From NCBI GenBank assembly GCA_904063045.1, contig CAJFCJ010000020.1, positions 736,916-800,915 on the forward strand: 64,000 nt of DNA. Reading direction: 5' to 3'. This DNA comes from Dimorphilus gyrociliatus. Its lineage: Eukaryota; Animalia; Annelida. The notes beneath the pieces are model-generated. The model worked only from the letters and a program-made list of their open reading frames with translations. It had not been told where the DNA came from and searched no databases. The translations under genes were made by a program, and so were the position numbers. Positions 18,898 through 46,025 of this stretch are shown one piece after another (the stretch's first letter is position 1; every line of letters starts with the position of its first letter).

Positions 18898-20393
18898 CTA
18901 CTTAGGTATGTGTACATCTTCTAAGGATCCGGCAGTTTTCGGCAGAATCTATACAAAGGAATAGATATGTAATTATTTAGTTATTAATTATAGATGATTA
19001 ACAAAGAGAATAACATACGTGGCATTGGCATGTCGTATTTACTCGAATGTAATTCAACGAAATTGATCCTCCGTGAAGTGGTTCAATGAATGCCTGAACA
19101 AAAGATGTTTGCTGTTTACAGGACGATAAGAATCTGTACAGATAAAGGATAAATTATATGTATTTATGTATATATTCAAATATGTTTATAGGGAATGTTT
19201 ATCTGTTTGTTTATTGTGTTTGTTTGCTTTTTTTTAAGCTTTTCTTACTTTTTATGATTTATTCCGTAACAGCAGTCGGGACATTCTCTTTGCAGTTCTC
19301 GATGAGTGATTGAATGCCAATTTGAATCGGTATTATTACACTCTTCCACGTAAAAATACTGTTCATATTTGGCTCTAGGAAAAGGAATAGTTTTTGTAAC
19401 TTTTACTCTCTCTTCGTTCAATGTTTCAGCTGTATCCAATTGAACCCATTTAAAGTTACTAGGGCAAGCCGCCATTTCAGTTAGTGGTACTCTATTTATT
19501 CTTTTCTCTATTTTCTAAAGAAAAAGAATATATAGTAGAACAAAAATCAAGCACCGCATTTCTAAAGAGAATCTTTATATAATAAGAAAAATCAACTTAC
19601 TCTTCATTACTTTAATGAGTTTCTCCCTCTTTTAAGTAAAGTAAGTCTGCTTACCTTTAAATAGCTATGTTTGCTGTTGTGTTGAGGTACGATTACGGAT
19701 CTGGTTCTATGATTGATATTTTCCTTATCCTGGAGGAGAAGCGACGACATAATCGAAGTGAGTAGACTGAGTCTTGTATTTCTCTCCTTTGCTATGATTT
19801 CATCTGAAAGGAAACGTTTCTCTATTATAAAGGTTTCTTTTAATATAAGCTATTCAATTGCTGCCTACCACGTTTGACGTGATCCGAATGATTCGACGTC
19901 AAATCCACATTATAATCACTCTGGACTGAAAAGTACAATATATTAAAGATATTTTAAAAAACCTTGCTATATTGTTCCCTAAAAATAGTTTATAAGGGCG
20001 CGGTAAACTATAATAGATCTTAATTAATTGGTTTTCCAAAAATAGTGTAAAAGGTCATTTCATCTCCCAATCTTGGGTTGAGAATTAAAACACTCCTTTA
20101 TATTAGTCAGACTGCCTTTTTTTTTTACCTATTCTTTTATTGTAAGTGATAAATCCTTAAAGGTCAAAAACTTTTCAAATTACAAAAGTTTATAATAACT
20201 AGTTTGCCAAAAAACAATTGACTTTGTCAATCAAAATTGAACTTAATCAAATGAGAAAAACACTATTATTACTAGAATTCAATCTATGTAAATAAATTAT
20301 ACATTCTATTGTTTATAGCAGAAGTATAATTGAAAAGAAGGATGGGCACTAGAAAGAAGAGATAGAAAAGTAATGAGAAGACAGAGAGAGGTA

Positions 20394-20428
<35 letters not shown>

Positions 20429-20842
20429 GTTTGAGGAAGGGAGGGAAAAAGAGAGACAGGGTAAGAGAGAGAGAAAGAAGAAAGAAATGAAACAGAAATG
20501 ATTGAAACATATTGAAATTAGACAAGACATTTCAAAATGGTGTTCTTTTCCTTCATTTATAATCAATTAATTTCTTTTTAAAAAAAAAAGACATAATAAA
20601 ATTTTTCTTGTTTTATTTTTTAGAAAAGTAACAAAACCATCAATAAAAATCCTTGGATATATATGTTTATATATATATATGTATATATATATTCATTATA
20701 TACGCTAAATATCCCTTTATTAAAGCCATAGAAATACCAGATACTTACTGCCTTGGAACTGGAAGGCAAGCGTCGACGTAAAATGTAGTGTCGTAAACGC
20801 TGCCAAAATAATTTTATTGGTATTTTCCGGTTTCTGTATCAT
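18898..20842 (-). CDS. Neurotrophin (NGF/BDNF/NT-3 family cystine knot) prepropeptide, 6 exons, 243 aa
   Basis: Exons 20842-20749, 19925-19869, 19803-19655, 19514-19249, 19133-19019 and 18948-18898 are all GT-AG and phase-compatible. Signal-peptide-like KIILAAFTTLHFTSTLA, basic sites VKR, RTR and EKR, mature domain ACPSNFKWV...QYFYVEEC...CYGINHKKFLSSCKQQTSFVQA...YIRVNTTCQC matching NT motifs (C-x5-W-V, QYFYETxC, CRGID, CxxxQTYVRAL, IRIxTxCVC). Confidence 0.88.
20397..20425. repeat. (AT)n microsatellite in neurotrophin intron 1
   Basis: Direct inspection. Confidence 0.9.
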
Positions 20843-21477
20843 TACACAATCTTTTTAGTATAATTTTAAATATTTTCTCTTTTTTTTTTCTTTTAAAATT
20901 TTCTTTGAAGTTGCCGATTCGTAGACGCAAAACCAAATGAAAAAGGCGAATATTGTCTTCCGTTTGTTTTGCGCCGTCTGGCGATAATATCTTTTTTTTT
21001 TAGTTTATACAAGATTTTCCCATCTTTTACCTTAATTTTACCTTTATTTTTGATTTTAGATAGAAATAAGTTGTTTTTAGACAATTTTTTATGCATATTA
21101 ACTAATATTTTTTCACTCTTATCGAATCTCTCCTTTGGTTAGCCGTCTATCCTCATTTAATATAGTACATAAAAGAAATGTCACGTGATCGTCTACCAAA
21201 AATAGTTATCTAAGGTGCAAATTCAGCGATGGTGATAAATAAGGTCATAGACCAGATTAAATGATAACGTCAAAGGAATATATTTGGTTAAAAGTCACGA
21301 TATATATACATTTATCCATCGTTTGGATGTATGAAGAATTAAAAAGTGCTGGGAATATAGATAAGAGACAGTATAAAAAGATTGTATATTAATAGTAATA
21401 ATAGTAATAATAATTTTTTGAATAATAATAAAAACAACTTCATAAAAACGTTACATAAGGATAAAATTAATAAATCC

Positions 21478-24400
21478 CTATAATGATTGAATGTCAATAG
21501 GTATATCAAATTGTGTCGATATTCGTTTAAGCTCTTCTTCGTAACGTACGTTTCTCTCCACAGCTTGTTTATAATTATATTTAAGATCTTCTATCTCCTC
21601 GAAAAATGCTGGTCCAAAATTTTCCAATTCTTTATTTAACTTTTAAATTTGATGATGGATATAAAAAAAAAGGAAAAAGAATGCTTTAACAAAGAGACAA
21701 GTAATGATTTATCACGATTTCGCTTACTTTTCCTACTCGGTTGTTTAATTGATCCCTTTCTAGTTCAACTGCTCTTAATTTAGTTCTTAAATCGAGATTA
21801 TCCTCTATAGTCTGGTCGTGAACCCTTAATTTCTCTACCATTTCGTCATCCCGCTAAAATAAAATATATAATATATTTATATATTAAATACTTAATTATT
21901 GATTTTACTATATCTTGCATATCTCCAGTGACCGTTCTTCTTCTCAAATTTCTTATTTCTTTCAATAATTCGCCTTTTTCCTCTTCTAAACGACTAACGT
22001 CCATTCTGTTAATTACGATCAGGGGTTAGTCGGTATCAAACCATTAAGTAATTATTTAAATACACTCTACAACTGATCCCATATATAATTTATGGAACGT
22101 ATGGAATTGTATCAAATTTACTCTCTTCCTCCTTCTCTTGTTTTTTTATTTTCCCCGTAAAGGATAAAGATTGAGAAGATGACAAAGATAAATTATATCA
22201 ATTTTGGAAATAAAGGAAGAATAAGAATAAGAGAAATACATAAGATGAATATTAAATTAAGTTTTAATTAGTTAAAACACGCTAAAATGTATAAATGAAT
22301 AAAAAGAGGAAAAGCAACGAGAGAATCGAACAATTAAACCTTGTCTGCTGTAATAGAGATAGGGTTTCCCCATCAGCGTGGGTTGTTGGAACTGTTTGAA
22401 TTATTTGTATCTGCACAAAGGAAAACCTAAGTTTAGTAACAAATTTGCAAATATGAAATATCTTTTTGCTCACCTGTCGCTGTAAATCTCTATTATCCGT
22501 AATAAGCTCCTGCTCTCTCATGGCCGCTTCCCGAAGAAGAGCCTTAGAATCGGCTAACACCTTGTCCTTTTTTTAATTAGAAATTTTTCTCATTATATAA
22601 TTAATCTCAATAAATTGTAATTATATTCTATAATTTTAGGATATTAATAACAACTCGCTTGTAAGAGAGTTATATTTATCCTATAAGGTTAATAGCCTTA
22701 TTTCTTACCTTCTTCTCTAGATCTTCCTCTAATTCTTTTATTCTAGTTTCATAGAGATGAGTTGTAATGTTTGCTTTACTAGCAACTTTCGATTCGCCCC
22801 CATGCAATTTAGCCTTGACCATTTCGAGATCAGAATGCAATCTATCCCTATTTCTCTCTACTTGCTGAACTTGCATTTTCAGCTTTTCGTTAGTTTCGAT
22901 CTCTTTTCTTAACTCTTTACGTAATTTTTCATAATCTTGCTTTATTCTTTGAACAGCCATTTGCTGGCTTTCGTATCTCTCGGACAGAGATGCTCCGACT
23001 TTTGATCTAAGTTCTTCCAGTTGTTCCCTTAAAGCGGAATTTTCTTTTCCCAGACCTTTCAATTGTTCGGAGTTCACTATTCCAGGTGTTTTTTTCAATC
23101 TTTCATTTTCTAGTTGCAATTTTTCAACAACTTTCTTAAGAAGGGCAATTGTTCGCTCCAACTCTCGAGCGCTTTTTCCCGACTCTCCAATCTGTCAGAG
23201 AGAATTAACTAGTCGTGAAAGGATAAAAAGATTGATCCTTTTTTTTTAACTTACCCTTCTTACGCCTGATGGGGGTGTCAAAATTGCTGTAAGACGTTCA
23301 GTAGAACCTGACGAGTTCATACTTAATTGCTCTTTTTCCATTTTCAATACGTCAACATATTGCTGTAGATCGTGAACTCGCTGACGTAATCTCGGTACGT
23401 CTTTATTTAGTTTTTCTATTTCTAATTTAAGTTCCACATTCTCTTCACTAACTTTAATAAAGTCTCTCTGTAATTTTTGTTCTTTTTTCTGTAACGTTCT
23501 ATGTGCAGCGGATGAGATGGTTTCCGAATCTCCGGCCATAGTCCGTCTTGTTGCCTCCTGCTCGTAGGCGTCTAAACGCTCAGAAAGGAATTTATTGCGT
23601 AATTCGATTTCTTGAACTGTCGTTTCCTTTCCAGCCAGGAGTTGACGCTTCATTTCCGCAATCTAAAAGTAAATTTTTCTTTAGTAATAGAAAAAAAGAG
23701 GGAAAAATTTATAAAAGAACTCTGACATTCTATTCCGTCTTTCCTTTGACATGAAAAAAAAAAACGATTAAATGTGCTTACTTCTTCTTCTAATTCAAAG
23801 TTCCTCTTCTTATACTCTTCCAAGGAGTGCTGCTCTTTAATACTAGATGGCGCAAAAGCTGAGGGTTTAGTTTTAGGTTTAGCGGAACCGGAAGATTTTA
23901 AAGATGAAATTCTCTTTTCAAGTTGTTCTTTTTCTTGATTGGCTCTATTAGCGAAATGTAGTTAAATTAATAAGTTGAAAGTATGAAATCAGTTAAAAGT
24001 TTAAATTCATCACCTATTCAATCCTTCTTTGTATCTGTCGCAATCTTTGTGCAGCTTCTCCACTTCGTTATCTTTGTCCTTTAAACGAGTATTTAGTCTA
24101 TCAACCATTTGCTGCCATTTCTTAGTTTCCTCCCATTTCGCTACAGCCTCAGGCTGATTAAAAAGATAAAAGATTGTCGTTTATATGGATCAGAAGAAAT
24201 TACTCTTAAATTATCAATTATTGTTGTCAATTACTTTTGTTTGTTCGTAAGGTTTTTCGGCGGTCATTTTCCTTTTAAGTTCATCTTGTAATACTTTATT
24301 TTTTCGGCGTAACTCTTCAACTTCTCTCTGATTATCACCAGCAACGAATCCCTGGAGGTCAGTGTGGGGGTGTGAAAGGAAATTGATAAATAGATCTAAT

Positions 24401-27400
24401 TTTCCAAACGTGTATTTCATACTAACCTGCTTCCTTACATTACCCATTCTACGAATTTTATTGTCAAGATCATCAACCTCCTCTTCTAATTTCTTTTTAT
24501 CGCTTTTAAGCTTTTTTACCTGTTTCTCCAGACGCCCTGTTAAGAGATAATGATTACATATCCGGTTTCAGTAGAAAAAATTTGACATTTTATTAAACTA
24601 ATTTTACCTTTATCAGCTTCAAATTCTTCTTGTGCGAGTGCCATATGTTCACGTTCTTTTTGGATGATCTTATTTGATTTCTTCAAAGAGATTATCTGCT
24701 TTTCTAATTGTTCAACTTCCTCTTGAAGACCTTTTGTCCTCTTATCAACAACCTTCTCTATATGAATCTCGGTAGACGTTTGATCTGCGTAGGCTTGAAC
24801 TTCACTTTGGGCTTGTTTAACCATATCCGATCTCAAGTCTTGAAGAGTTTTACTAAGGGTTGCTTGCTGCTTTTCTTTATCTTTTAGATCGGATTTAAGT
24901 CGCTCAACTAGTTGTTTCATGGCAGTTGTGGGGGCTTTTACATTTTCCCTCTTTTGATGCTCGATTTCCTGATACAAAATAGCAATTTGGTCACTTTTTT
25001 GTCTAGCTTCCTCTTCAATATTATCCAATTGTTCCTTTACTTCCGACAACTCCAAATTATGGTTTTCTCTAATGGAATCTATCTCAGCCGAATGAGATTT
25101 AATTAGGTCATCGTGCTTACATTTCCACGAGTGACACTCTTGTCTACACTTAGCTAACTTATCTCGCAGGGCAGCCATCGAATTATCTCGTTCAGCAACT
25201 TCGTCTTCTAATTCATTCAATCTACGTAATTGTTGATTCGTAGGTAGAGTGCTCTGATCTATTTTCTCTGTAGCAGCCTTTCGTAGTTTCCTCAAACCAT
25301 CTTCTCTTTGAGCGTGGAGTTGTTCTTGCAAATTTTTCAATTCTATCTCGTGACGCTTAGCCTGATGTAGAAGATCATCTCTGGCATTTTTCAATAGTTC
25401 ATCGAATTTTGCAATAGTTTGCTGTTTCTGCTCTAGACGAGCTTGAAGAGATGCAACTGTTGCTTGGGCAACTTTAACCGGATAATCTGCATCTGTCGAT
25501 GGCGGAGCAGAACCTTCAAGATGGGCAGTAGCTTTGGCAATAGCATCATCACGTTCTTGTGAGGCTGGTAGACGTAGTCTAAGTTCAGTAATTACTCTAT
25601 CGCGTGCCGTAACATCGCATTCTAATTTCTTCACTTTATTTTCGAGCTCTTCCATTCTCTGTTGAACGAAAATAAGTTATATATATTATTCAAATTTTTG
25701 GCGCGAAACTAAAAAATATTTATCTTAGCCAGTTTAGTAGACTTAGCAACTTAGCTCATAGATTTTTTATAATAGGCCTACGAGATAAATGGCGGCAGAT
25801 ATACGGTATCGAATGCATCAAGAAATCTATAAATATTTATACAAAGCTGATTATGCGCAATGCAGATCGGTTATGAACAAATTGATGTGCTACGGTCACA
25901 GTATAATAAAATATCAACCGGAATATCCTTTGATTTACTGTGTTGCGCTGATGATCGGTTCAGGAATGACATTGGATATAAGTGATTGGTACTGCTTTAT
26001 AAATAAATCTCTAAGCGAACCTCTACTGAGGATAGTGTTTCTTGTTGGACATAGAGTATACGATATGAGTCTAGAAAGACCATATTTTGGTGAGAAAGTT
26101 AAGCGCTTCGAAGCGACAAAACGTGCTTATACTTTGCATAAAAATGGCTCAGTACGAACTCTAAGAGATTTAAGCATTATAACTATTCGTAGTAAGTTGC
26201 CAATACCGTATTGTCGATACGTAAAACAATTAATATTGGATAGTAAACTGCCTGCAAAGTTAGAAATGGAATTACTATTTGAGAAAGAAATTGATGAAAT
26301 AATGGAACAAGCTCAAGAAGAACAATTAGTATCAATGATGGGTATTAATACTTATGAAAAATTCCTGTTAGCCGCCTTTTCCTCAAGTTGATTAATCGTT
26401 CCTTTGTTGAAATAATTTTGTTATTTGTGCTCAATCCTACCTCTTTTAATTTTTAGTGATTTTAGTTAGGAAACTTTGATAAATGATGTTTGAGAAAGCC
26501 TTTAAAAAGTTTATTCTACTTACTTTTTTAGTTGCCTGTGTTTCGGCTCGAGCGTCTAATATGAGTTTCACATTACGTTTAATCGTTGTTGTTGCCTGCT
26601 CTAATTGTTCGGCAACTGGAAGTGAAGTATCGGGAATTGCACCGACAGCCGATTCAAATTGAGAAGCTGCCGAAGCAATTTCGGCTTGGTGTTTTTCCAT
26701 ATTCATTATTGTTCTTTCTAATTCTACCTCCCTTTGTTCCCATTCCAGCTGTCTAGCTTCCAATTCCTTCTCCATCCTAACTTTTTGTTCGTCGAGATCT
26801 GAAGCCTCTGCTTCGTATTGCTTATTAACGGATTCCAAATGATGAATTTGCTGTTGTAATTTATCGCAGTTTCTCTTGTGTTTAAGCATTTCCAATCGAA
26901 CCTCCTCCAAACGACTATGCCATTCCACCACCTTAGCCGCTCCCGCTCCATCCTTTAAGGCGCTTATTAACTCTTGCAATCCGTCTCTTTGTAATTTAGC
27001 TTTTTGTAATTCACTTTCCACTTTATCTCTGTCTATATTTGTCAATCTTAGCTGCTCTTCCACATTAGCCTTATCCTTTTGAAGTTTAACTAGATTTTCT
27101 GTAAATTTCTCTTGAGTAGGTAGTGGGACAGCGCCGCTGTACCTTCTTCGAAATTCTTGGAGTGTAGTTTTTAGATACCGTTGTTTTGTACGAGATTCTT
27201 GTCTATTATGATATATGGTTTGATCTTTCTCATCTATCTTTCTTTCAGTTCTTAACAATTGAGCTTCTAGTTTTAAAATCTTTTTATGACTATCTTGAAC
27301 TTTCCTAACTGCAGTTCCTTCGCTTATTTGCAATTGGACGAGCTGACGGTGTAATTTACCGATAACAGATTTCTCATCGCTCGAACATTGGAAGTCAAGG

Positions 27401-30400
27401 AGTTGCTGACGAAGCGATGTTACTTCCTTATCACGCGAAACCTGTTGTTGGTCTAGAGCTCTGGCTTGATTCGAGGCAACCTCGGAAATGTCTTTAAGGG
27501 TTGCTACCTCCAATTTAGTTTTAGACAATGCCTCTTCCAATTCTAAAATTTTTGTCCTATCTCTATCACTTATTTCTTTTGTTACAGAATTAGCGAGCTC
27601 ATCCTGAAGTTCCCTTTCAGTCTTTTGTAATTCGAGGTTCATCTTAGTTATTTCTCGAAATTTACTCTCCAATTCAAAATTTCTATCTTCCAACTCTCTT
27701 AATTGGATTTTTTGTTGGTCATACATTCGAGCAGAATGATCAGCTCTCTGCCTCTCGTTTAATTCTTTTAGCTCCAAAGTAGTTATTTTCTTTGACAAAC
27801 TAATTACATCAGAATCCCCGAGTATTTCCGTCGCTTCTCTTCCAAGACCTTCCTTCCTTAATCTTTCAAAGGCTGCTTCAATGACGTGTAATTTCTCCTT
27901 CTCAGTTGACAATTCCTGTTTGAAAACATCATTTTCAGATCGTAAGCGTTTTATTTCGACCTCGAAACCGGAATTCTCTTCATTCTTCGCCACTAAGTGA
28001 TTACTTTTCTCTAATAAATCCCTGTACTTTTCAGTCAATTCCGTGTGCTCTTTATTGGCTCTTTCTAGATCCTTAGATGGAACACTATCATCCAAACGCT
28101 TTTGAAGACTAGCTAATTTAAAGGATGCCATATCCTTATATCTTTGTAAATAGCTTATTCTATCTGTTATGGCCGCTTCCATCTCAATCATTTCATTTTT
28201 GAGCTTTGTATTTTCTTTTCTACAAGTTTGCTCCATCTCAGAAAGTGCTGTAAAGCGTCTAGTCAATGCTTTTTCATTAACCTTTAACACAGTTATTTTT
28301 CTTGTTAAATCCGCTAAACGACTTTTAATTTCATCTTCATTTGATAGAGAGTCCAATAGATTCTAAAAAAGGAGAGAAAAGAGAGGATATGTATTATAAA
28401 TTGAAAAAGCAACAGAAATTAATTACATCTAATTCAATTCCTTTTGCCTTTGATTCTTCTTTCTCACCAATGGCGTCTTGTAATTCTTTTCTTAATCTCT
28501 CCAATTCTTTATCCATTTCCTGGTTTAAGTAATTAAAACATAAATTACAAGTATTGTGTTAATATTCTGCTAGGATTAAAAGAAAATACGAATAAAAAGA
28601 AGAGCAACAATACCTTTTTTCTTTCAATATATTCTTTGTATATTAAACCCTGTTGAGTTCGAACCACAGCAAATTTCCTTTTATAAACTTCTAGGGATTC
28701 TTCCATTTCCACAAGCATTTTTTCCTTAAGTGACAACTCCTATACGGATAATTAATTAATATTTCCTGTTTCCAAAATTTAAAAATAATTTACGAAAAAC
28801 GAACTTGTAAAATTTGAACTAAATGCTCGTTTAATGATGCGATAACATCCGAACTAGTTGGAGCCATTCCTTCGGGCAACGCAATCGTTTGAAAGTGAAC
28901 ACCAGCACCTGCTTCCTTAAGCGATTTTAACTCTGCTTCTAAAGTATTTGTCTAAAGGTTTCAAACACATTAATAAATCAATGTACGACTGAAAATCTAA
29001 TGTATCTTATTACTTTATTCTGCTGTTTTTCAAATTGAACAGTTGCTTTTGTTGCTTCGTATCTTACATCTCTTAATTCCTTTCTTAAAGCTTCATTATG
29101 GCCAGTCAAATTATCAACTTGAGCTTTAAGGTAAAACGTTGCATCGTAACGTCCCATGACATTTTTAGCTTCAATGGCCTATTTTATATGGTAATTTAAT
29201 ATAATGGCCGTGTAAGTTATTTCGTCTAAAGTATCTTTATATAATATTTACCGTGAGCATCTTGTCTAATGATGGGCATTCTAGCACGAGAGTTCCTCCA
29301 CTATTGACTCCTAGACGTGAATAATTAATATTAATAATCTTTAGCTTACAGAATTTCTACTTTATTACTTTCTTCTTCAAGGGCAGACTTAATTTCTTTC
29401 AGACCATCGTGCAAACCTTTATTCTCCTCTAAAAGATCTTTTTCTTTGTTCCTTAATTCGCTAGTCTCAAGGCTAAGTTTTTGGAACTTTTTCTCCAATT
29501 TTTCCATTTCAATCTTTTGCTTTTTACTCTGTTAAAATATACGACCTGTTTTTAATATGGTCTTATTTGCTGAATGAAAGAAGTACTAACAAATATCTCT
29601 GCTGTTCCTGGTTCAGCGGATAACTTTGAAACGGTTTCCGAAACTATAAAATTATCTCCAGTATCTTCAGACCAAGCCGCTCTAACACCACTAATCAATG
29701 TAAAAATATATATATCATATTATTAATTAATTATTAAGAGGAGATTAATAATGACCTTGGTCCTACTCTACGTGCTAGAAGACGGATTTGGTTCTTTAAT
29801 TTATAAATGGTATCTTCATTACCCTCAATCTATAGATTAATTACGATAAAAGATAAAATTAAAAATTGAAATTAAAGATATTGAATTATCTGACCTCTTT
29901 TTGTAAAATCATAATATTTGCTCTGTCTTCTTCTTTTCTAACTGCCTTTAACATTTTAAAATCTGCAAGGTCAATCTTATCATCTGCCTTGTAGCCTAGT
30001 CTTTCCCTAAGTGCTTCATTTTCATCAGCCATCTCATTTAATTTCCACTCGCATTTATCAATGTGTTGAATTAGTTCTTCGTATTGTTTCTCTAGATTTT
30101 TCTTCTCATTGTTAACTCTTTTTAGATCTGTAATGGCGTCACTCAGCGGATCATTACCAGAGAATCTATTACGGTATTCTTCCCAAAATTCATTCATTCT
30201 TCTGTCTTTTTCTTCGGCATGAGCTTCTGCTTCTACAGCTTTTTCTTCTGCAATTCTTAATTGTTCTGCTTGAGTTTTCATCAATTCTTGCATTTGAGCT
30301 AGTTTCATTGTAACCTTTCCTACAGGCTGACTCTGGCCCTTATTAATTTCTCTACGTAAGTCCTCAATTTCGGCTTTAACTTCGTTCATTTCATTTACTC

Positions 30401-31665
30401 CATCGCTTAGTTTATTAGTCAGACTTTCTATTTCTTTATTTTTATCCTCTAAAACTTTTGTTAACAAAGCAACAGATGCTTTTTCGGAGTCCATATTAGC
30501 CGCTGTTAGACGGTCTTTTAAGTCTGAAATTTGACTATTCAAACGAAGAATATGAGCATCTTTTTCAGATAAAAGATTGGTCCAACTTTCTACTTTCTCA
30601 TTAACGTAAATCATAATTTGGTCGTCAGCGTCCAATTTGTTTTTTTGAGCATTGTGAAGAGCTTCATTTTGATCTTTCAACATTTCGTTTTCATTCTCGA
30701 GTACTTTCAATTGCCTATCAGAATCGGTATATAATTGTCTCATTTTGAAGCATTCTTCTTTGGTTTTTTCAAATTCTTCGCTACCGTCCCTTATTTCCTG
30801 TTTTAAGTCTTCTATACGCCTTTCTAAAGTGATCTTTTCATCATATAACTTATTCATTTCATCTTGTAAACCAGACATATCTTTGTTCTTTGCCCTTAAA
30901 TTCTCCCTTTGTTTATCCTCATCTTCTCTTTTGGCTCTAAGCTCTTCATTGAACTTTTGTACCATACCTTGTAGCTTATTTTTATCTTCTTTTAATAGCC
31001 CACTCTCTCTTTGTGAATCTCGTAAATCTCTTTTCAGATTTTCCATTTCTGCTGACTGTTGTTCTAAATTTCTTCTCTCCTTATCCAGGTCCACCAAAAT
31101 ACTTTCTTTTTGTCTTCTGAGCTCATCAACCATTTGTTCTAAGCTTTGAATATTATTGATAAGGTTTTCAGGTACCGACTCTCCTGTTGTTGTTCTTATG
31201 CTCTTTTTCTAATACAGAAGAAGCAAAAATTTAAGAAAAACAACAGGTATTTATTAATGTCTCTGACTTACTTTGGCTTCTTGTAGTTCTAACTGAAGTC
31301 TGTTTACTTCCTGTTCCATCTCCTTTTCTATTAAAGCCAAAGTTGAACAAACTGCCGTTAGCTATTATTCACCTACCTCTCTTTTTGTTTATTTTTGAAA
31401 ATGACATCACTTCTTCCGTAGCGACTTCGAGTTCGACACATTTTAGGTTTAAACATTGTTGGAGAGCGTTTACGAGTATTTGAACGTTAGAATCCTCAGA
31501 AACAGACTCAGGTTCCCGCTAAAATAGAGCTTTATCACTTTGTGTAAAGTGTCTAAGTACAAAATAACTTACAGAAACCAAAAACTCGATTACATTCACA
31601 ACTTCTTCGTCTTTAGCATCTTCAGCATTAAATGTAGCTAAAGACTCAATAGTTAGTTCGCCCAT
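21478..31665 (-). CDS. CEP290: Centrosomal/ciliary transition-zone protein CEP290, multi-exon
   Basis: Long coiled-coil exons with CEP290-specific strings: LKVNEKALTRRF, ISYLQRYKDMASFKL, ELNERQRADH, DEKSVIGKLHRQLVQLQISE, ARDRVITELRLRLP, C-terminal FFEEIEDLKYNY. ATG 31665, TAG 21478-21480. Confidence 0.95.
25789..26391 (+). CDS. Intronless 200-aa protein with a C-terminal SOCS-box-like motif, antisense within a CEP290 intron
   Basis: Good Kozak context (taaATGG). 26152-26280 encodes VRTLRDLSIITIRSKL...LILDSKLPAKLEMELLF (BC-box [STP]Lxxx[CSA]xxxI plus an LPxxL Cul5-box-like segment). Lies wholly inside the 865-nt intron 25659-26523. Confidence 0.7.
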   Translation: MAADIRYRMHQEIYKYLYKADYAQCRSVMNKLMCYGHSIIKYQPEYPLIYCVALMIGSGMTLDISDWYCFINKSLSEPLLRIVFLVGHRVYDMSLERPYFGEKVKRFEATKRAYTLHKNGSVRTLRDLSIITIRSKLPIPYCRYVKQLILDSKLPAKLEMELLFEKEIDEIMEQAQEEQLVSMMGINTYEKFLLAAFSSS

Positions 31666-32192
31666 AGTTTATTGAACGATTTAAAGTACCGAACGAAACT
31701 AGGAATAGTTGCGAGTCTAAACTTGACAAATCACAACGTTGATCTTTTTGGTTATATTGAAAAAATACAAAAGGGTATTTAAAAGCAGAAATCTTCAAAA
31801 TAAAATTTTTAACAGCTCAGAAATACTTAGTTTCCATGTTGTATATAACATAAAATCATTTTACAAAAGAATTTCAGCGCTTGTTGATAAGGGAATTCCA
31901 GGAAGTGACGAAATAACCCTCTAGGGGAGTCCTAGACTAAAGTCAAACCGCTAATATTACATACATTATTATTATCAATGCAGTTTTATAATTATTCAAT
32001 ATAACTGAATGAAAAAAGCCAAAAACTCATACCCATTGCACGTTCATTGTTATAGATTTATTTTTGAAAAATAATAAATCGCAAGTTTCTGTTAAAAATT
32101 AACAGGCGGATCGCGTGGGAAACAACATTAACTCGGTTGGCCAGTTCTACAATATAAACTCTGTTGAACACAAAGGTACTATGGCCACATCA

Positions 32193-33775
32193 TCAACTGG
32201 ACGGTTGGTTCCGTTCCGCTAGAAACTCTTCATATGCTTCCGCTATTTCCTCATCGATTCCGTCATCTGATTCTATCACTTCCTCTACTAGTTCATAACT
32301 TAAACAAGAAATATTTCCATTATACGTGAAAAAAGAAGGAAAAATATATGAATGCCTTACCCATTATAAACAAAGTCCTCCTCAAAGGGAATAAAGTCAT
32401 TTATATCTGGGGGAAGAGAGCGGGAATCAACCAAGTTACCGCCAGTAAATTCTCCATTTTCGGTATATGCTGGTAAATCTCCGTACAATTCGTTATGTGT
32501 ATTTACAGCTTCTGGTAAGGAGTATATATGTCCGGCGTTGTAATAGAAAACCGGGCAGTCCTGTGAAATCAAATTATAATATCAGACTTAAAATCAGAAG
32601 AGACAGGAGTTTGGAAGACGTTGATCTTTAAACTTACAATTGTCTCTAAACAAATGCCATCATAGCTTTTGTTCTTTAGGCCAAAGTTATTTGCTCGTAA
32701 CTTTACCAAGGATAACAGCTTCATACGAATGCGCCTTTGTGTAAAATAAAACATAGGGTAAATATTTAACACTGATTAATCGACCCTTTAACTTCCTTAC
32801 CTGCTGGCTTTACTGCTTACTATGATATTTTCAATAGGAGAAAATAGCCAATCTAACATATCTTGTAGACGAGGTGGTCCGGCTTCTTTGGATTTACCGT
32901 GCTTCTTAAAGTGTTCGCATTGAGCCAGAATTGCTCCGGTCATCTATTTTTAACGTATTTAGATTATAAAGGATGTGAATTTAATAATATCGAGTTGCTG
33001 ACTTTTATAACATCAATTACTGCTATGACCACGTTCTCCTCAAGGCGAGTCATTTCCCGATTATGAGCATATTTCATGATCTCTTGCACTATTTGGTTCA
33101 GCTTGGAGCCAATTTCGCCCATTCTTGAACCGGTAGAAGACTGAAATGGTTTAACAATGTTATAGGTTTCAAAATGGAAACATTAGTATGGGCCCTTACA
33201 ATCATATTTAGAAATATCTCGCCCATAAAAAGAATAGTTCCAGACAGGAAGTCCAATTTATCCGGTTGCCCAATGGCGCCCATTGCTTTCTCAGCTTCTT
33301 CATTACACCTTTAAAATAAATTAAACGTTCTGATTCATTCAGTTTTCAAAATTTACAAACTTGTTGATCAAGTGCGCTCGGAAGTCTACGCCGTCTATTA
33401 TTGTCGAAGATAAGTGCTTGTTCAAGTAGACGAACATTCTGGCGCAGGTATATCGAATTGATGATGTTGAAACACCCTATTTAAAACGGGATAAATTCAA
33501 ATGCTGATAGCCATTACACCATAAAGTATACATACCAAATTAAAGATATATGATACAACTGCTGTCACATCAGCATTCGTCTTGCATGCATTTTTCAAAT
33601 TATTAACTAATTTCGGCATCACCTCATGGTAGGAGCCAGGACTGGCTGTTAATGAGGACATTGCAGTCCTTACAGCGGTCATGGCCGTTGAATCGTGTTG
33701 ATCGCCGGCAGGTGCGACTGACTGCAAACTTCGAGGTACGAAAATTGCAGCCCCGGCAGATAGTGAGCTGGTCAT
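32193..33775 (-). CDS. PAIP1: Polyadenylate-binding protein-interacting protein 1
   Basis: N-terminal PAM2 motif SSLSAGAAIFVP, MIF4G-like helical exons, acidic C-terminus GIDEEIAEAYEEFL. Confidence 0.8.
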
Positions 33776-44783: not shown

Positions 44784-46025
44784 TCATCGATTGATTGTAT
44801 CTCTGTTTTTAGGGGAATAAATCGCATAATAGAAAACAATTACCTTATAGAAAATGTACAATATACAGTATAGTCTTAAAAAAAAAACATGGCTTAAATT
44901 TGGATTACCTTCTTGATTGAAGTCAAAGAGTTTTGGTATCATTACGGTTCTATTCGATTGAAATACACTTAATGATTGATCAAGTATTAATCTCTCAACA
45001 ATTTGGTTTGGGTCACCCATCTCTTGCGAACCTAAACTATTGAAAAATGGTAAACCAAGCGCTTCTACTGCTGTAATTCGTTTGTTCGGTGGATAAACTA
45101 GTATGTTTTCAATAAAAGGAACAATTTCTGAATAGGTTCTGGTAGAGTCTGAAAGTAGAACTCTTTTCCAAGGATGAGGAGTAATTTGTGGAAATCGAAA
45201 ATCACGAAACTCGGGATTCATTTGATCAATATCTTCCTTGGTAGGAGTACCTAAAACTTTGATTATCTCCACTAACTGATCAACACTATCGTTTCCGGGA
45301 AATAGAGGACGACCTATCATCATCTCTCCAATTACACAACCTACTGACCATAAATCAATTTGAGTTGTATATTTTACGCATCCAAACATTAATTCGGGAG
45401 CTCTATAATATCTTGAACATATGTACGCTACACTAGCTTCTCCTGGTTCAAGGAGTTTTGCAGAACCAAAATCGCAAAGTTTTAAAATTCCCGTTTCATC
45501 GTTAATTAGTAAATTTTGAGGTTTAATGTCCCTGTGGCAATAGTTTAATCTATGCAAATATGCTAAACCGCGGAATAATTGATAAGTAAAAATTTTTATC
45601 CAAATCAATGGCATTGCTCTTTCCCTTTTTGCATAAACTCGTATAGTTTGATAAAGCGTGTAAGGTAAATATTCAATAATCAAGTTCAGATAAAGTTCTT
45701 TTGAATTATCGCCGTGAGTATAATAATAATAAAGTAAGTTAATCAAATTTATATGCGTAAGATCTTTCATAATTTGTAATTCTCTGTTTTTATATCGTTT
45801 GTCTAGAAGAACTTTCTTTATAGCAATGATCTTATCAACTTTAGTATCACCGCAGTAAATTAATTGAGCTTTAAAAACCACACCAAACGAACCACTACCA
45901 ATTTTTTCGCGTTTTATCCATTTCAATTCAACAATCTTTTCTTGTTCATTAGCAAGAGCTCTCTTAGACGCATATATCGTTGTTACTTGAGCATGATCAG
46001 CAAGTTTATCTTTTCCATTAGCCAT
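44784..46025 (-). CDS. GSK3: Glycogen synthase kinase-3 family kinase, divergent; kinase domain in one exon, C-terminal exon unresolved
   Basis: IGSGSFGVV, AIKKVLLDKRYKNRELQIM, HRDIKPQNLL, LKLCDFGSAK, YICSRYYRAPEL, FPGNDSVDQLVEIIKVLGTP. Donor at 44908 after FDFNQE; likely ATG at 46025. Confidence 0.9.
   Translation of the reverse strand: MANGKDKLADHAQVTTIYASKRALANEQEKIVELKWIKREKIGSGSFGVVFKAQLIYCGDTKVDKIIAIKKVLLDKRYKNRELQIMKDLTHINLINLLYYYYTHGDNSKELYLNLIIEYLPYTLYQTIRVYAKRERAMPLIWIKIFTYQLFRGLAYLHRLNYCHRDIKPQNLLINDETGILKLCDFGSAKLLEPGEASVAYICSRYYRAPELMFGCVKYTTQIDLWSVGCVIGEMMIGRPLFPGNDSVDQLVEIIKVLGTPTKEDIDQMNPEFRDFRFPQITPHPWKRVLLSDSTRTYSEIVPFIENILVYPPNKRITAVEALGLPFFNSLGSQEMGDPNQIVERLILDQSLSVFQSNRTVMIPKLFDFNQEGNPNLSHVFFLRLYCILYIFYKVIVFYYAIYSPKNRDTINR

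Follow-up and report, generated by a model that had tools for sequence, protein, structure and literature searches.

The minus strand of Dimorphilus gyrociliatus contig CAJFCJ010000020.1 holds six small exons between positions 20842 and 18898 of the 64,000-nucleotide stretch analysed here (the window), and this locus raises the question of whether they encode a genuine neurotrophin and, if so, what sets it apart from the neurotrophins already described. We conclude that it is very probably the single NGF-family neurotrophin gene of D. gyrociliatus, orthologous to the neurotrophins (NT) of Capitella, Platynereis, Helobdella, Lottia, and Aplysia. The initial annotation had proposed a canonical-type neurotrophin hidden in six exons, with a loop insertion, an extra cysteine pair, and a mature domain split by introns; the family and the six-exon model were upheld, whereas the hiddenness of the gene and the novelty of the cysteine pair and of the split domain had been overstated. 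The gene belongs to a known family and is unexceptional within it: its extra cysteine pair and its multi-exon organization can both be seen in sequences already published. Dimorphilus stands apart only in an L3 loop of somewhat greater length and in a few substitutions at otherwise conserved positions.

Read from the window sequence, the six exons assemble into a 243-amino-acid prepropeptide, with a coding total of 732 nt (243 codons plus the stop TAG), exon end phases of 1, 1, 0, 2, and 0, and five introns of 823, 65, 140, 115, and 70 nt, all five bounded by GT..AG, in an AT-rich region (~30% G+C). The consistent phases proposed initially were thus exact, and a 76-amino-acid piece on the minus strand (19245-19475) is indeed the sole long open reading frame (ORF) of the region. 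The same 243-amino-acid protein is public as CAD5124128.1 (UniProt A0A7I8W782, UniRef100_A0A7I8W782), where it carries the names "DgyrCDS12429 [Dimorphilus gyrociliatus]" and, automatically assigned, "Neurotrophin-3." The translations of all six exons are exact substrings of this protein, in order, and the split codons I32, D51, and K189 are likewise consistent with it. Since an identical model, named neurotrophin, already stood in NCBI and UniProt, the gene was not hidden. The public D. gyrociliatus gene models were built with AUGUSTUS, exonerate, and PASA and merged by EVidenceModeler (EVM); all our whole-protein analyses used CAD5124128.1. The contig itself is annelid, and contamination with human DNA was rejected. 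Altogether, the six-exon observation is confirmed as a real and intact gene that was already in the public annotation, and the public gene model is confirmed as coherent.

The family assignment was decided by profile comparison. The whole protein matches the Pfam NGF profile (PF00243) at 60.1 bits (E 2.7e-16, cut-off 27) over profile positions 5-110 of 112 and the Pfam Spaetzle profile (PF16077) at 14.2 bits (E 0.071), under its cut-off of 27. Because the NGF score lies above its cut-off and the Spaetzle score below, this hidden Markov model (HMM) check, which had been called for beforehand, favours a neurotrophin over a Spaetzle-like protein. Exon 4 alone reaches 25 bits over NGF profile positions 5-66 and exon 5 alone 24.9 bits over positions 72-107; since the two exons separately match colinear parts of the profile, the neurotrophin match is far beyond chance. 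The pro-region exons, exon 3 included, have no Pfam match. In a sequence search of the PDB, all 17 distinct chains matched were neurotrophins (NGF, BDNF, NT-3, and NT-4), with venom NGF as the best (E 6.6e-7), followed by NT-4 (3.1e-6), BDNF (6e-6), NT-3 (1.3e-4), and then NGF, the E-values ranging to 2e-2; exon 4 aligns with BDNF and venom NGF, and exon 5 with residues 87-123 of NT-4. In the ESM Atlas, the clusters closest in features and in structure belong mainly to the NGF family, with Spaetzle-family clusters also listed. Moreover, the 77.9-Mb genome (349 contigs) contains no second NGF-family locus. Searching with exon 4 by word index returned one protein, a 91-amino-acid ORF from Logan assemblies of several runs that is 91% identical to exon 4 and shares one 90% cluster with CAD5124128.1. 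A large HMMER search with the same exon returned only this ORF, a fragment from the sister species, and a bacterial lamin-tail-domain repeat protein (38.6 bits summed over four repeats), which was rejected as spurious.

The mature domain contains eight cysteines (residues 117, 159, 178, 181, 182, 194, 224, and 226). HMMER alignments to NGF, BDNF, and NT-4 identify C117, C159, C182, C194, C224, and C226 as those of the knot, as the initial annotation had read them. The gaps between these six are 41, 22, 11, 29, and 1 residues, against 42, 9, 11, 27, and 1 in NGF, and the series ends in C-x-C; the C-terminal ~130 residues are thus an NGF-type cystine-knot domain with vertebrate-like spacing, except for the longer Cys2-Cys3 loop. 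The insertion in this loop amounts to 13 residues relative to NGF and BDNF. The loop counts 9 residues in NGF, 14 in Capitella NT, 15 in Lottia NT, 16 in NT-4, and 22 in Dimorphilus, and given the Capitella and Lottia lengths only 7-8 of its residues are lineage-specific. In human NT-4 this loop carries a separate insertion, which shows that insertions are tolerated there.

The 22-residue segment and its CPDC pair, both pointed out initially, are present, but the pair is not special to this worm. Around Cys3, Dimorphilus reads RE-CPDC-C-YGINH, Capitella RE-CPGC-C-IGINH, and Lottia V-CPGC-C-RGINH; the Capitella and Lottia motifs, as well as those of Daphnia used below, were translated codon by codon, by eye, from the nucleotide alignment in Additional file 1 of Wilson 2009 (PMC2772990). 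The sister species has CPNC-C at the same place and keeps all eight cysteines where they can be seen. Since Capitella and Lottia carry CPGC-C at this position, the C-P-x-C pair is a family trait rather than an innovation of the worm, and it is common to annelid and mollusc neurotrophins. C178 and C181, the two additional cysteines, would in the simplest case bond to each other and give loop L3 a small fourth disulfide. In the neurotrophin literature searched, we found no discussion of the CPxC pair, which is absence of evidence only.

The precursor probably begins with a signal peptide of about residues 1-26 (window 20842-20765), and its N-terminus would act as such: a hydrophobic core at residues 11-21 (Kyte-Doolittle hydropathy 1.93) lies in a moderately hydrophobic segment (residues 11-27) that the sister species has conserved but for two conservative changes. 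A pro-region of ~80 residues, free of cysteines, precedes KR104-105, which stands in the context K-K-I-E-K-R, 11 residues ahead of Cys1, a placement comparable to that in NGF and BDNF and to the RSKR site of Platynereis NT. A proprotein convertase would cut after KIEKR (residue 105) and leave ~11 residues before Cys1. All three basic sites noticed initially (VKR, RTR, and EKR) occur in the sequence, and VKR50 and RTR85 may serve as additional cuts; both are kept in the sister species, but this means little because the two species are too close. The Aplysia NT is reportedly processed to several isoforms, and multiple cuts would then not be unusual. N-glycosylation sequons are found at N43, N160 (directly after Cys2), and N221 (before Cys5). 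The mature protein would form a noncovalent homodimer that activates the worm Trk in the nervous system.

Conservation was followed on a genomic contig of the sister species (L001, Logan run SRR23372228) aligned to the window. Between the two species, exons 1-5 show 90-98% identity and no indel, and their AG and GT splice sites are all kept, while indels abound in the introns. The codon changes in exons 1-5 comprise 34 synonymous and 17 nonsynonymous ones, of which exons 4 and 5 together account for 24 and 9, respectively (14/8 in exon 4, a count that includes the last pro-region and cleavage-site codons, and 10/1 in exon 5), with a dN/dS of roughly 0.15-0.2 by a crude site count. This excess of synonymous changes shows the gene to be under purifying selection. 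Upstream of the ATG, a short noncoding block is also conserved, with indels in its flanks, and may be 5'UTR or core promoter.

A canonical Trk receptor gene is present in the same genome. An exon-level protein search with a Trk-like kinase exon located it on contig C28, where two Ig-like exons (the first of I-set type) are followed in order by a transmembrane segment, the motif NPNY, and a kinase whose activation loop reads DLYSTDYYM. Its kinase scores 324.8 bits against TrkB, 317.8 against TrkC, and 310.8 against TrkA, MuSK coming next at 244; upstream LRR-like and LRRCT-like exons were recognized by eye only. Another Trk-like kinase, on contig C14, has the loop DIYTCDYYK and an NPNY juxtamembrane motif, and its one-exon match gives 88 bits for TrkB versus 82 for MuSK. 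Its sole recognizable ectodomain exon is EGF-like, and it may belong to the "Trkl" class described for protostomes (Wilson 2009, PMC2772990). Searches with the TrkA_TMD, LRRCT_2, and TNFR_16_TM Pfam profiles gave chance-level matches only.

Several observations weigh against the neurotrophin assignment or parts of it. The vertebrate NGF signature, of PROSITE type and as quoted in Wilson 2009 (PMC2772990), is [GSRE]-C-[KRL]-G-[LIVT]-[DE]-x3-[YW]-x-S-x-C; the protein reads C-C-Y-G-I-N-x3-F-x-S-x-C, with exact spacing but with fitting residues at 4 of the 8 specified positions, and so does not match it. Capitella and Lottia NT deviate as well, with I or R at position 3 and N at position 6, hence this signature is vertebrate-centred. 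The Asp30 of mammals, "strictly" conserved in canonical neurotrophins according to the same study, is replaced by Thr both here and in the sister species; an ungapped comparison counted after Cys1 sets the A-E-T-L of Dimorphilus beside A-R-D-I (Capitella), A-R-D-M (Lottia), and A-T-D-I (NGF). In addition, Leu takes the place of Trp in the vertebrate motif W-R-F-I-R. These two substitutions mark the protein as divergent, and with Thr at the Asp30 position the label "canonical-type" applies only in part. In word-index searches, neither the whole public protein nor its mature region gave any match at E up to 10. An AlphaFold2 model from a two-sequence alignment reached a mean pLDDT of 34.5, too low for structural use. 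The splice junctions are predicted from the genomic sequence and the public gene model, the candidate signal peptide is only moderately hydrophobic, and no counterpart of exon 6 could be aligned in the 220 nt that follow exon 5 on L001. On the receptor side, the second Ig-like exon of the C28 gene has no sequence match to solved Trk domains in the PDB, for which reason the ligand-receptor pairing is assumed. Moreover, neither an exon-wise HMM scan of the genome nor a search for TNFR cysteine-rich domains (CRD) found a p75NTR, though the loss is not proven because a scan of this kind may overlook a death domain that has diverged. Only one clear TNFR-CRD gene emerged, on contig C24 (TNFR_c6 45.8 bits); it has a transmembrane segment and no death domain detected within reach, and was rejected as p75NTR on the latter ground and because its CRDs match CD40, DR6, and HVEM better.

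Some of these points would suit a Spaetzle-like or NT2-type cystine-knot cytokine that signals via Toll-like receptors and is not a Trk ligand. Such a protein shares the cystine-knot superfamily and, in the case of Spaetzle/DNT (PF16077), activation of a proprotein by cleavage; the weak Spaetzle match extends across the whole knot, the defining Asp of canonical neurotrophins is lacking, just as it is from Spz and NT2, and some Spaetzle clusters are among the ESM Atlas feature neighbours. We nevertheless consider this very improbable, with a Spaetzle score that stays under the cut-off against 60.1 bits for NGF and with PDB matches that are all neurotrophins. In addition, Spaetzle proteins, which act on Toll receptors, have an extra Cys by Cys5 that serves the covalent dimer, and many Spz read CC-x-C at this place; the worm protein has T-C-Q-C (N-T-T-C-Q-C) without the CC doublet. 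Its lophotrochozoan motifs recur in the NT of Capitella and of Lottia, both placed among neurotrophins by Wilson 2009, its genome holds a Trk gene, and no Spaetzle gene was reported from lophotrochozoans (Wilson 2009, PMC2772990). As a separate observation, the sole other Spaetzle-profile match in the genome is a subthreshold one (19.2 bits) on contig C25, in an 87-amino-acid open frame ending in L-P-S-L-C-H-C, which may be another cystine-knot ligand or chance.

If the locus is accepted as a neurotrophin gene, its 3' end is a matter of its own, the 16 C-terminal residues encoded by exon 6 being the least certain part of the model. The gene could be real while exon 5 reads through its donor into intron 5, adding 6 residues (two more cysteines among them) and a stop, or is followed by another last exon, so that the exon 6 tail would not be in the protein. 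The missing counterpart in the sister species speaks for this, as do read-through tails that differ between the two species and the lack of a transcript-derived protein in the databases searched. However, the sister-species contigs all end in a (TA)n run ~220 nt after exon 5, hence exon 6 of that species may lie beyond this microsatellite, and neurotrophin C-terminal tails are variable anyway. The public EVM/PASA annotation has exactly this exon 6, a good donor follows the CQCH codons in both species (GTATGT here, GTAAGC in the sister species), and the exon 6 acceptor has a pyrimidine tract before its AG after an intron whose 70 nt are typical of the gene. We thus hold a wrong 3' end to be unlikely, although well short of negligible. 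We find it scarcely credible that the whole locus is a pseudogene, a relic of a compacted genome that is decaying or not expressed: the supplements of the genome paper contain no expression entry for it, its protein has diverged, and a p75NTR could not be detected, but the ORF is intact over six exons with canonical splice sites throughout, synonymous changes exceed nonsynonymous ones 2:1 against the sister species (24:9 in exons 4 and 5), and the eight cysteines are kept there where seen.

We also put forward, as a speculation that we ourselves find rather doubtful, that CPxC before Cys3 is a conserved and so far undiscussed signature of lophotrochozoan neurotrophins, providing a fourth disulfide or a redox-sensitive CxxC in L3. 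In NGF-p75NTR structures, L3 contributes to the contact with p75NTR. A loop growth of 7-8 residues without a detectable p75NTR would then fit a drift to Trk-only signalling.

The miniature marine annelid Dimorphilus belongs to Dinophiliformia, the group sister to most other annelids, and its compact genome has kept the neurotrophin-Trk pair already recorded from Platynereis, Capitella, molluscs, and Daphnia. For the specialist, two further points are of use, namely that CPxC-C is common to annelids and molluscs and that p75NTR is apparently absent here; neither alters the picture of neurotrophin evolution.

Table 1. Features of the D. gyrociliatus neurotrophin locus (window positions unless a contig is given) and of other genes mentioned in the text
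Feature	Position	Strand	Description	Identity to L001
Exon 1	20749..20842	-	94 nt; ATG 20842-20840; probable signal peptide, then propeptide start; CAD5124128.1 residues 1-31; donor GTAAGT	88/94 nt
Exon 2	19869..19925	-	57 nt; propeptide; CAD5124128.1 residues 33-50; VKR at 19878-19870 (exon end); NHS glycosylation sequon	56/57
Exon 3	19655..19803	-	149 nt; propeptide; RTR at 19708-19700; CAD5124128.1 residues 52-100	137/149
Exon 4	19249..19514	-	266 nt; likely maturation site KIEKR (KR 19505-19500)	242/266
Cysteines of exon 4	Cys1 19466-19464; Cys2 19340-19338; Cys3 19271-19269	-
Loop in exon 4	19337-19272	-	expanded Cys2-Cys3 segment; CPDC 19283-19272
Exon 5	19019..19133	-	115 nt; NTT sequon; donor GTATGT	103/115
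Cysteines of exon 5	Cys4 19120-19118; Cys5 19030-19028; Cys6 19024-19022	-
Exon 6	18898..18948	-	51 nt; 16-residue C-terminal tail and TAG; CAD5124128.1 residues 228-243
Conserved noncoding block	20901..20928	-	28 nt, ~60-85 nt upstream of ATG	26/28
Intron 1 microsatellites	20380-20425 and 20640-20700		(TA)n and (GA)n
Kinase domain (PF07714)	45291-45911 (G000:C20:782206-782826)	-	90.5 bits; 446-aa frame
Canonical Trk gene	G000:C28, ~24.3-32.65 kb (24300-32650)	+	loci L037 and L016
Trk-like kinase	G000:C14:104100-110200	-	locus L035
TNFR-CRD gene	G000:C24:353500-354600	+	locus L038
Spaetzle-profile match	G000:C25:100020-100157	-	locus L039 2467-2727
ROR/MuSK-like kinase	G000:C6:2600049-2602700	-	locus L012
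DDR-like genes	C1:197 kb; probably C10:722 kb		discoidin exons

Other kinases were encountered in the receptor search. Those first found through the DNA patterns for (S/T)(S/T)DYYR and Y-x-x-DYY(R/K) were rejected as Trk, being ROR-like (C6), DDR-like (C1 and C10), insulin-receptor-like (C17), and ROS-like (C15); the true Trk was on C28. The ROR/MuSK-like kinase on C6 carries NIYSCDYYR as its loop, and a cysteine-rich exon of Frizzled type lies upstream of it. The kinase domain inside the window is unrelated to the neurotrophin gene.

Among known systems, the closest are the lophotrochozoan neurotrophins reported from Capitella teleta, Lottia gigantea, and Helobdella (Wilson 2009, PMC2772990) and from Platynereis dumerilii (Lauri et al. 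2016, PMC4812194), along with Aplysia ApNT. The Dimorphilus protein has in common with them a predicted prepro layout in which a basic cleavage site precedes the cystine-knot core of ~120-140 amino acids, C-P-S-x3-W after Cys1, Q-[WY]-F-Y before Cys2, C-P-x-C directly before Cys3, G-I-N-H after it, 11 residues between Cys3 and Cys4, and the terminal C-x-C; its genome, like those of Platynereis and Capitella, includes a Trk with Ig domains. It differs from them in its Cys2-Cys3 loop (22 residues, against 14 and 15 in Capitella and Lottia), in the Thr at the Asp30 equivalent, where Capitella, Lottia, and Helobdella keep Asp, in a vertebrate-like QYFY instead of QWFY before Cys2, and in a likely cleavage site that reads KIEKR, not RSKR. 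Platynereis and Capitella, moreover, have the p75NTR that was not found in Dimorphilus.

With vertebrate NGF, BDNF, NT-3, and NT-4 (PF00243), the protein shares the six knot cysteines, Q-Y-F-[YF]-x-x-x-C, C-x-G-I-[DN], S-[FY]-V-x-A-[LF], and I-R-[IV]-[DN]-T-x-C-x-C, and NT-4 carries its insertion in the same loop. Unlike the worm protein, these neurotrophins lack the C-P-x-C pair and have a loop of 9 residues (16 in NT-4); knot identity is only ~25-30%, Asp30 and Trp99 are not conserved in Dimorphilus, and the vertebrate precursor lies in one exon against six here. The initial annotation had stressed this last contrast and the splitting of the mature domain, and the domain is indeed divided by a phase 2 intron between Cys3 and Cys4, but such a split had already been described: the Daphnia pulex NT has six exons, four of which share the knot, and the sea-urchin NT2 is also multi-exonic (Wilson 2009, PMC2772990). 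The Daphnia NT thus resembles the Dimorphilus gene as a protostome neurotrophin with a six-exon precursor and a knot divided by introns, and differs from it in the number of exons that bear the knot, which is two (plus a tail exon) in Dimorphilus, and in showing no CPxC pair in the published alignment.

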